A stretch of 63,789 nucleotides of DNA, the filler included, from Olpidium bornovanus S191 (lineage: Eukaryota; Fungi; Olpidiomycota), in assembly GCA_017911155.1 (NCBI GenBank). It is 28 parts of 28 records of this genome, joined end to end, with 100 filler letters (N's around TTAATTAATTAA, not from the genome) between each part and the next. Parts side by side here need not be neighbours in the genome. Positions count along the whole stretch, not along the records: positions 1 to 2,791 come from JAEFCI010011476.1; 27 more parts are not named here. One strand, 5' to 3'. Position numbers and translations under genes: made by a program. Below are positions 255 to 7,088 of this stretch, one piece after another. A model generated the notes under the pieces. It was not told the origin of the DNA. It saw only the letters and a program-made list of their open reading frames with translations, and searched no databases. Position 1 is the stretch's first letter, and the number at the start of each line of letters is the position of its first letter.

Positions 255-1119
255 TCACAATCCCTCGGCCAGCTTGGCGGCCCAGCTCCTACTGTCGCTG
301 GCCAGTGCCATCAGGTAATCGCTCCGCTGCACAACTTCGAAGCGGCACATTCTGCCCGGCTCGTGGCCGACAACCGACGCGTCCAGCATGCCGGTAGCGC
401 GGGGGCCAGAGTAGACGGCGAGGGCCGAGCAGACGAGGTTGGCTTCTCTGCAACGGCCGGAAACCGGGAAGCGACCAAAACGTTTCCCGTCAGAAAGCCA
501 GCGGGCACGGGAAGGCCGGCGGGCCGGTTGGTTACCGGGGCATGCCTTACGCGGACAGTATGCGCAGGAGGGCCACGGCGTCGGCGCCGGCGTGTTCCAA
601 GTTCAGCACGTCAACGGTGGCCGCGGAGCCGGCGATCCCGTAAAGCTGCGAGCAAGCGGCGGCGATGTGGAGGCGAACCTGAAGGTCCGTCAGCGGAACT
701 CGCGGAGGTTTATCAAAGACCCTGGAGGAGGCATTGGCATCGGTGGGGTGCAGCAAGCCCCCCCAAAGAAAAAGAAAATAAAAAAGAAACGGCGGGAACA
801 AGGCCGCGGCCACACAACGGCAGAGGGCGTGGGGTGCGAGAGAATTGAAGGGGAGAGAGAAGGACGTCAGGTCGGGAGCCGTGGCGGCAGACGGCGTTTC
901 GGAAAAAGCAAGCGGGTCCCTCTTGTTTCGTGCCACCCACAATTTCACCTTGAGGTAATGGAACTCGGTGCCGGACGCCACGGTCAACTTCCAGCGCAGC
1001 TTTGCCTGCCGCTTCCGTCCGGCGGGCGCGGTCGCGGCGGTCGCGGCGGTCGCGGCGGTCGGGGGGCGCGTTCCAGGGGACGGCATGGTGCGCCTGTCCT
1101 CCTCCTCCTCCTCCTCCAT
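255..1119 (-). CDS. RPP14: RNase P/MRP protein subunit of the Rpp14/Pop8 (Pop5-like) family, 3 exons
   Basis: Spliced translation ...TEFHYLKVKL|VFDKPPRVPLTDLQVRLHIAAACSQLYGIAGSAATVDVLNLEHAGADAVALLRILS|..EANLVCSALAVYSG...RMCRFEVVQRSDYLMALASDSRSW..*. It matches the Rpp14 motifs EYHYMKVCL, LFGEVDAALPLDIL, KLWSSLTL and CAFRVIQVSPFLLALSGNSR. Introns are GT-AG; stop at 255-257. Start could be the ATG at 1119 or the next Met (MPSPG). Confidence 0.85.
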
Positions 1120-1296
1120 GGGGGCGGGGGGCGGTGGTTGCGGCACGCCACCGACGGGGAAACGGGGCGGGGGAAAAGGGGAGGATCCTCCTCCGCTCTG
1201 CGCCCCGCCCGCTCTCACTCCGCGCGCCCCGCGCGCTTTTTCCCGCTGTGAAGGAAGACGAAGCTTTGAGGTCTGGCCGCCCCGCGCCCACGTCTC

Positions 1297-2791
1297 ATGG
1301 AGCTGGCGCCCGTCCCGCGCGCAGTGGCTGCCGCCGCAAGGGTCGCCCACGCGGCCGCCGCCGCTGCGGCCGCGGCGGCCGTTCCGCCGGGAGCCGTGAC
1401 GCGGACGCCCCCCGCCCTCAGAGCGTCCGTCGCCCGCCCGCCCCGGACTCGGGCCTTCGCCGCCCGCGCTGCCCCCGCTGCAGGCGCAGCTCGTGGGCAG
1501 GCCGCCGCCGCCGCCGCGCCGGACCGACTCCAGTCCTTCTCGAAACTGCTTGCCGACGGTCCGTCGTTTGCCGACTTTCTGAGCAAGCAGGAGGCGCCGC
1601 TCACACGTGAGGAGGCCTTGGAGCTGAGAGAGACGGTCTCCAGGGAAGCTGCCGCCGCGGATGCTGCTCCGGCCGCCAAGCAGGCGGAGCCCGCGAACAA
1701 GAAAAAGGCGCCGTACGTTTTACCCGTACGCTGTTGGCGCAGCCTTGCCCGTTCCCGCGATGTCTCAGAACCTCTGAGCCGCAACTGCCGCCGGAACCTT
1801 GCAGCGTCGTCCGCCTCCCGCCGTGGCTGAAGACCGAAATCCCGGGCGGCGCCAACTACGCGCGGATAAAGAAGGACCTGCGCGGTCTCAACTTGCACAC
1901 CGTCTGCGAGGAAGCGCGTTGCCCGAACATTGGTGATTGCTGGGGCGGAGGCGCCAACCAGACGGCGACGGCCACCATCATGATAATGGGGGATGAATGC
2001 ACCCGGGGGGGCCGGTTCTGTTCGGTGAAGACCAACAGGACGCCCAAGCCGCTAGACCCGAACGAACCGGAGAACACCGCAGAGGCGATATCCCGATGGG
2101 GTTTGGACTACATCGTGATCACTTCGGTCGACAGGGACGACCTTCCAGACGGCGGCGCCGCGCACTTCGCCTCCACCATCCGGAAAATCAAGGCTAAGTG
2201 GGTGACTCCTTTGTTTGGCCGAATGCTGCCGGCGTGTGTCTGTTGGAGAGCGAACAACGGTTTTACGGTCGGTGAGAACGTTCCGCTCGTCCATTCCCCC
2301 TCCCCTGCCTTTTTTTTTTCTCGCAGAGCAAAGCACATTCTGGTCGAGTGCCTGACCGGTGATTTCCAAGGCGACCTCGACTGTGTCGCGGAGGTGGCCG
2401 GCGCGGGACTAGACGTCTACGCGCACAATGTCGAGACGGTCGAGGCGCTGCAGGGATACGTGCGCGATCGGAGGGCGAACTACCAGCAGTCGCTCTCTGT
2501 TCTCGCTCACGCCAAGAAGGTCCGGCCGGACCTGGTAACGAAAACTTCCATCATGCTGGGGTGCGGCGAGACCGATGACGAGGTTTTGCAGACCTTAAAA
2601 GGTGAACTCGCGCGCCTCCTGAACTGTTCCAAAAGCGTCTAGGCTGTCGACCGGGCCCGTTGCGCCGGCCGGCAGACTATAAACTCGCACCCGCTTCTTT
2701 CGTGAACCTCGCTCAAACCGGTTTTTCGCAATTTTCTTTGCCAGACCTGCGCGCTGTGGGCGTCGACTGCGTCACGCTCGGCCAGTACATG
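1297..2791 (+). CDS. LIP5: Mitochondrial lipoyl synthase (radical SAM), 3' truncated at contig end
   Basis: Motifs [21 protein letters not shown] (CX4CX5C), [41 protein letters not shown] and [16 protein letters not shown]. Introns at 1713-1804, 2198-2326 and about 2602-2744. The Ala/Arg-rich N-terminus resembles a mitochondrial presequence. Confidence 0.97.
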
Positions 2792-6800: not shown

Positions 6801-7088
6801 GAGAGCAAAGATGCCTCGAGCGCAAGTTTCCGCTCGAGAATTGCTGGGAGAGGCTGGGCCTCCTGCGACTCTGATCTAAAGATGCCTTGATTTGCCAATT
6901 TCCGTTTGGTAAGTGAGGCTTGGAAAGGAGGGTGCGCCTTTTGTGACACGTTCCATTCGCATATTGACTTAAATGGCGTATGCACTACAAGCATGTTCTC
7001 GCGTGTGACCCCTCATCACAAGGCAGCGCAACGGCCGACAGTTTTTTTAATTATTTGGTTGTTTTTTTTCGCTTTTTTTTTTTGTTAT

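Follow-up and report, generated by a model that had tools for sequence, protein, structure and literature searches.

The human RPP14 mRNA, which specifies a subunit of nuclear ribonuclease P (RNase P), also encodes HTD2 (PMC4705651, PMC8509007), and yeast mutants in the type II pathway of fatty acid synthesis (FAS II) impair mitochondrial RNase P (PMC3790967). Why RNase P should be connected with mitochondrial fatty acid/lipoate synthesis has been described as still enigmatic (PMC3790967). Fungal Pop8 has been linked to Rpp14 by published profile searches (PMC1636426) and the two proteins occupy the same site in their holoenzymes (PMC8509007). Here we describe a locus of Olpidium bornovanus (assembly GCA_017911155.1) in which an Rpp14/Pop8 gene lies head-to-head with a lipoyl synthase gene. 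The window analyzed is a 63,789-nucleotide stretch of joined genome parts, and the piece considered here, positions 1 to 2791, is the entire 2791-bp contig JAEFCI010011476.1. Olpidium bornovanus is a root-parasitic fungus which occupies a phylogenetically pivotal position. As in the human bicistronic RPP14/HTD2 mRNA, an Rpp14-family gene is physically linked to a gene of mitochondrial fatty acid synthesis and lipoate production. However, the vertebrate open reading frames (ORFs) share one mRNA as a tandem pair, HTD2 occupying its 3' untranslated region (3'UTR), whereas the Olpidium partner gene, lipoyl synthase, has an mRNA of its own and lies upstream of Rpp14/Pop8 on the other strand.

We consider it likely that the locus consists of two unrelated housekeeping genes arranged head-to-head, with a bidirectional promoter between them and a lineage-specific accident of gene order behind them, and not a conserved or selected coupling. 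The minus-strand ATG at 1119 and the plus-strand ATG at 1297 lie 177 bp apart on one contig, just as an earlier reading of the same DNA (the original prediction) had placed them, and the range which it gave, 255-2791, is exact, the minus-strand stop codon being at 257-255. In the public record of the contig lipoyl synthase is the sole annotated gene and the minus-strand gene is unannotated. Gene models were derived from the contig sequence and then compared with the assembled contigs of X1 and X2, two public runs which belong to separate studies. The contigs of both runs skip exactly 448-550, 722-940, 1713-1804, 2198-2326 and 2602-2744, and all five intervals have GT..AG ends on the strand of the respective gene. 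These contigs hence derive from spliced RNA and show expression of both genes; the Rpp14/Pop8 gene and the lipoyl synthase gene are both real, spliced transcription units. Contig depths of the two genes were alike in each run (13.4 vs 14.8, and 60.5 vs 50.2), a likeness which mostly reflects the fungal share of each sample. Two large raw-read RNA runs with the same organism label, X21 and X24, contained 0 reads of the locus and hence provide no test; their label probably denotes the host or habitat, with the fungus present in some samples only. Rfam and tRNA scans returned nothing near threshold.

The minus-strand gene extends from its ATG at 1119-1117 to the stop codon in three exons, giving a 543-nt coding sequence for a protein of about 180 residues. 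The queries of the protein searches were single exons or open frames. Exon 2 (551-721) matched the Pfam family PF20976 (Pop8) with an E-value of 1.5e-06 and 28.6 bits (curated cut-off 27.2) over profile positions 15-53 of 74. The translation of 258-446, from exon 3, gave a single match in PDB, human Rpp14 (6ahr_H, residues 89-120 of 124, E 0.033), and no match to human Pop5, the paralogous subunit in the same human holoenzyme, in that search with E-values up to 10. Because exons 2 and 3 separately match the same subunit and do so in collinear order, the gene is predicted to be an orthologue of the nuclear RNase P/MRP subunit known as Rpp14 in animals and Pop8 in yeasts, which pairs with Pop5. 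The original prediction had named this gene RPP14/POP8, and the profile (hidden Markov model) search speaks for that name and not against it.

Other searches with the minus-strand gene were negative. Exon 2 returned no match from PDB, neither it nor exon 3 gave any relatives in word-index homologue searches, and a protein atlas had no usable match for either exon. Together with an exhaustive search that also found no relative (see below), a Pfam score at the cut-off and a PDB E-value of only 0.033, these results are what would be expected if the gene encoded a lineage-specific small protein which matched Pop8 and Rpp14 by chance. We regard that as unlikely, since one subunit, under its two names, is matched by two independent exons, both their order and the regions matched (15-53 of 74, then 89-120 of 124) are the correct ones, and the joint chance probability of this is very low. 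Meaningful competitors were also lacking: in Pfam scans of the gene, which recovered no Rpp14/Pop5-family model, all other matches were at chance level (E 0.07 or worse), and in PDB there were none. Finally, the size of the protein and the spliced, expressed status of its gene fit Rpp14/Pop8. The identification as Rpp14/Pop8 is therefore retained, and the complete lack of relatives in single-sequence searches is in keeping with a small protein that evolves fast and belongs to an isolated lineage.

Compared with yeast Pop8 and human Rpp14 of the nuclear RNase P/MRP enzymes (PDB 6AGB, 6AHR), which exons 2 and 3 match, the Olpidium protein is likewise small, although at about 180 residues, with an N-terminal extension of ~45 residues made of acidic and Thr/Ala-repeat sequence, it is longer than human Rpp14 (124 residues, PMC4705651). 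Unlike the known members compared, it is too diverged for single-sequence searches to find its relatives. The first 40 residues contain 7 acidic and 7 basic residues and so do not form a mitochondrial presequence; an acidic, repetitive N-terminus of this character would be expected of a nuclear subunit. The extension is encoded by tandem repeats (1020-1117) in which a 9-nt unit present 3.8 times specifies a Thr-Ala-Ala repeat and (TCC)7 specifies the Glu run. Tandem repeats of this kind are prone to length variation. The product of the minus-strand gene was absent from both of the large protein collections searched.

On the minus strand, the coding part of exon 1 (941-1119), defined from the sequence, carries the Glu6-Asp and Thr/Ala-repeat N-terminus and ends in FHYLKVK. 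Intron 1 (722-940, 219 nt) has GTGGGT..CAG ends with a pyrimidine tract before the acceptor. Intron 2 (448-550, 103 nt) has GT..AG ends, and exon 3 (255-447) includes the stop codon and is joined to exon 2 at 447/551 in both X1 and X2. The 3'UTR occupies 1-254, where spliced contigs of X1 and X2 cover the sequence from position 1 or 3 through to 447, and it runs past the edge of the contig. One metagenome scan, seeded by a 24-nt word, showed 299-324 to be identical with 26 nt of an unrelated metagenome contig, Ga0182027_10007568 (6885-6910 of the retrieved locus L013). This match was considered as a leftward extension of the Olpidium contig and was taken as chance, as there was no further DNA or protein similarity.

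The gene on the plus strand starts with ATG 1297-1299, comprises at least four exons and is cut by the contig end, so that its C-terminus lies beyond the contig. Exon 2 (1805-2197) matched LIAS_N (3.9e-20) and Radical_SAM (7.6e-07), and TIGR00510 (lipA) was matched collinearly at positions 15-137 on exon 2 (180.8 bits) and 142-229 on exon 3, with per-exon scores below the whole-protein cut-off, as expected of pieces. Exon 2 was 80-85% identical to other fungal lipoyl synthases, and the lipoyl synthase reading frame was 100% identical to the deposited Olpidium protein. As in yeast Lip5, human LIAS and bacterial LipA, a LIAS_N domain with the auxiliary-cluster motif CX4CX5C, present in the exon 2 translation, is followed by a radical S-adenosylmethionine (SAM) core. 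The first 70 residues contain 9 Arg+Lys, 1 acidic residue and 32 Ala and are presequence-like. On these sequence features the plus-strand gene is assigned as mitochondrial lipoyl synthase, in agreement with the original prediction.

The spacer between the two ATGs (1120-1296) is 73% G+C and, read on the plus strand, has a G-rich left half and a C-rich right half, a mirror-image composition in which each 5'UTR is C-rich in its own sense. Its pivot is a GGATCC palindrome (1184-1189) flanked by 23-nt imperfect inverted arms (1163-1185 and 1189-1211). Four of the six GGGGCGG sites of the contig fall within the spacer, which makes up 6% of the sequence, and there is no upstream ATG in either inferred 5'UTR. 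The Pop8 transcript contigs reach 1143 in X1 and 1167 in X2 while the lipoyl synthase contigs begin at 1159 in X1 and 1236 in X2, so that the 5' ends of the two transcription units abut or slightly overlap (the contigs of X1 and X2 share 9 nt in reference coordinates). Since both transcripts have their 5' ends adjoining within the 177-bp spacer, this putative promoter, which also holds both 5'UTRs, is probably a compact bidirectional promoter shared by the two genes, as had been proposed; its G+C content and mirror composition fit such a role. GC-rich, TATA-less bidirectional promoters of housekeeping genes have the same head-to-head layout with less than 200 bp between the ATGs, the same high G+C, GC-box-like motifs in both orientations and abutting 5' ends, although for Olpidium, where the data are assembled contigs, shared regulation is a prediction. 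In such an arrangement a single promoter, compact, GC-rich, TATA-less and bidirectional, would drive outward transcription of both genes, and Rpp14/Pop8 and lipoyl synthase would probably share basal, housekeeping-type regulation.

Non-axenic zoospores were the source of the O. bornovanus genome, which a metagenome approach assembled into 13,695 contigs (29 Mb; PMC7865070), and the two genes would not be genomic neighbors at all if JAEFCI010011476.1 were a chimera of this metagenome-style MEGAHIT assembly. The origin of the material and its short contigs (PMC7865070) leave room for such an event, and no single independent contig that was examined spans 1143-1236, contiguity being given by the deposited contig together with the overlapping transcripts of the two runs. 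However, since Pop8 transcript matches up to 1167 and lipoyl synthase transcript from 1159, every possible junction site is covered by transcript, and the spacer contains no long repeat which could seed a false join. Of all the alternatives that we weighed, a chimera is the one to which we give the least credence, and we continue to treat the two genes as true neighbors that share a promoter region.

To place the pair in a wider context, the lipoyl synthase loci of 11 other fungi from seven major lineages were examined with 5-6 kb on each side. They comprised Paraphysoderma and Catenaria (Blastocladiomycota), Spizellomyces (Chytridiomycota), Conidiobolus, Basidiobolus, Piptocephalis and Dimargaris (Zoopagomycota, three subphyla), Mucor, Rhizophagus and Lobosporangium (Mucoromycota, three subphyla) and Aspergillus (Ascomycota). 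Synteny was examined from the lipoyl synthase side only, no Pop8/Rpp14 relatives having been found. None of the 11 loci had a Pop8/Rpp14 neighbor, and the genes upstream of lipoyl synthase all differed (Q_salvage, bHLH, mitochondrial carrier, WD40, Complex1_LYR, GIDA/MTO1, LSM, or none called). Because the Olpidium gene had itself escaped annotation, screens for hidden genes were run on ten of the loci, Aspergillus being judged by annotated genes only. When the three Olpidium exon peptides were compared by phmmer with all six-frame fragments of the ten loci nothing better than E 0.5 was obtained, and 64 ORF fragments, taken upstream of lipoyl synthase on the divergent strand at these loci, showed no Pop8/Rpp14 in a Pfam scan which did recover the Olpidium exon included as positive control. 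In S. cerevisiae the genes LIP5 and POP8 are on different chromosomes, and so are LIAS and RPP14 in the human genome.

With the adjacency absent from the 11 fungal loci, and the genes on separate chromosomes in S. cerevisiae and human, the Rpp14/Pop8-lipoyl synthase adjacency is not ancestral. The survey of microsynteny that had been proposed with the original prediction, run here around lipoyl synthase, thus found no such pair in Blastocladiomycota, Chytridiomycota, Zoopagomycota, Mucoromycota or Ascomycota, and the suggested ancestral coupling of Rpp14 with mitochondrial fatty acid synthesis and lipoate is not supported, the hidden-gene screens of ten loci being negative as well. The pairing would instead be fortuitous, a quirk of how genes are ordered in one lineage with a compact genome.

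Some of the neighbors of lipoyl synthase in the other fungi are mitochondrial. Catenaria has a Complex1_LYR gene (locus L009, 3721-4331) and Lobosporangium has GIDA/MTO1, of mitochondrial tRNA modification (L010, 1572-4288). The neighbor in Rhizophagus is a divergent mitochondrial carrier gene (L007, 3138-4430). LYR proteins bind acyl-acyl carrier protein.

A selected coupling, either ancestral or independent, in which supply of an RNase P subunit and lipoate synthesis are co-regulated in parallel to RPP14-HTD2, was weighed against this accident of gene order. The background invoked for it in the original prediction is correct: the vertebrate RPP14 mRNA does encode HTD2 too (PMC4705651, PMC8509007) and mitochondrial RNase P is impaired in yeast FAS II mutants (PMC3790967); the common 177-bp spacer and the similar contig depth in two runs would also agree with it. 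However, the yeast effect concerns the mitochondrial enzyme Rpm2/RPM1 (PMC3790967) while Pop8 belongs to the nuclear enzyme, which makes for a weak mechanistic bridge, the Olpidium Rpp14/Pop8 has no mitochondrial presequence, and the adjacency is missing from the 11 other loci. The coupling was, moreover, proposed after the pair had been seen, in a very large scan. By estimate and not by computation, the chance that one given gene adjoins a gene of the pathway is a fraction of a percent if the genome has several thousand genes and the pathway about a dozen. Any of about ten RNase P/MRP subunits would, however, have done equally well, and across hundreds of fungal genomes some adjacency of this sort between these subunits and the dozen or so pathway genes is expected by chance, again by estimate. 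We therefore judge a selected coupling very unlikely. If it did exist, it would be a second independent genomic link of RNase P with mitochondrial fatty acid/lipoate synthesis.

An independent coupling specific to Olpidium has a low prior, because the hypothesis is post hoc, the protein has no presequence and the yeast link is to Rpm2/RPM1. In its fullest form, Olpidium would have independently linked Rpp14/Pop8 to mitochondrial fatty acid synthesis and lipoate through the shared promoter, possibly with an HTD2-like second cistron in an unusually long 3' part of the mRNA that extends off the contig, and this we hold to be fainter still. Were it true, linkage of RNase P and lipoate would be no oddity of vertebrates but a trait that has recurred, under selection, among opisthokonts.

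The 3' region of the Rpp14/Pop8 mRNA was inspected for such a cistron. In 1-254 the third-position GC was 0.66/0.53/0.62 by frame, compared with at least 0.77 in the exons, so that no frame showed enrichment, and there were stops in all three minus frames. The only AUGs in this segment on the minus strand open one ORF of 14 codons and, right where the contig ends, one start at 3-1. A Pfam search of 1-254 gave no meaningful match, the sole one being at chance level (Carla_C4, E 0.23). No second cistron therefore starts within the 254 nt visible downstream of the gene, while the mRNA continues for at least 164 nt beyond the visible part: the X2 transcript contig (1009 nt) extends 164 nt past position 1, which gives the mRNA a 3' part of no less than 418 nt, compared with a coding sequence of 543 nt. 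The extension could be a long UTR, an overlap with the transcript of a convergent neighbor or, least likely, a second ORF.

Several points weigh against our interpretation of an ordinary, lineage-specific divergent pair. Pop8/Rpp14 evolves fast, and a diverged, unannotated neighbor in another fungus could have escaped the screens. Olpidium is without a sequenced close relative, and the comparison of conservation reaches other lineages only. The Pop8 Pfam score is marginal, falling to 26.6-27.2 bits once flanking translation is added to exon 2, and a phmmer search with the tail of exon 1, intron 1 and exon 2 gave 0 matches among 1.8 billion representatives. Sequence to the left of the contig could harbor a second cistron. 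Assembled contigs do not resolve the true start sites of transcription, and co-regulation is beyond what two runs can test.

The remaining structure of the lipoyl synthase gene was defined from the same transcripts. Exon 1 (1297-1712) encodes the Ala/Arg-rich, presequence-like N-terminus and the start of LIAS_N (E 0.012, residues 72-119) and is joined to exon 2 at 1712/1805, intron 1 (1713-1804) being skipped in the spliced contigs of X1 and X2. Exon 2 holds the end of LIAS_N with CX4CX5C and the start of the radical SAM core, as placed by Pfam and TIGR00510. Intron 2 (2198-2326) and intron 3 (2602-2744), also skipped in both runs, flank exon 3 (2327-2601; Radical_SAM 1.4e-09 and TIGR00510; joints 2197/2327 and 2601/2745). 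Exon 4 (2745-2791) is cut by the contig end; spliced contigs cross it and the frame is open to the edge.

The deposited model BJ554DRAFT_3620 (429 aa, 1297-2642) disagrees with this transcript-supported splicing at all three introns. It includes 12 extra residues at intron 1, translates the retained intron 2 in frame as 43 residues and runs on into intron 3 until a stop codon at 2640-2642, whereas the real gene goes on in exon 4 from 2745. In the deposited contig a G at 2010 also turns the middle Cys of the radical SAM motif CX3CX2C into Gly (C-T-R-G-G-R-F-C), a difference from yeast Lip5, human LIAS and bacterial LipA. Cys was found at this site in 119 of 120 homologues, the only Gly being that of the deposited Olpidium protein, and the middle cysteine of this motif is essential for a radical SAM enzyme. 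Since the X1 and X2 contigs both read T and so restore Cys, an error of assembly is the probable origin of the G at 2010, which comes after a run of G. Six differences were observed between the contig and the transcripts, three of which cluster at 79, 93 and 98.

The evidence points to an ordinary divergent pair of housekeeping genes restricted to one lineage, and the practical gains are modest. A previously unannotated gene, identified here as Rpp14/Pop8 on its exon matches, is added for a phylogenetically pivotal fungus, and the transcripts correct the splicing of the deposited lipoyl synthase model as well as a base, probably erroneous, in the codon of a catalytic cysteine.

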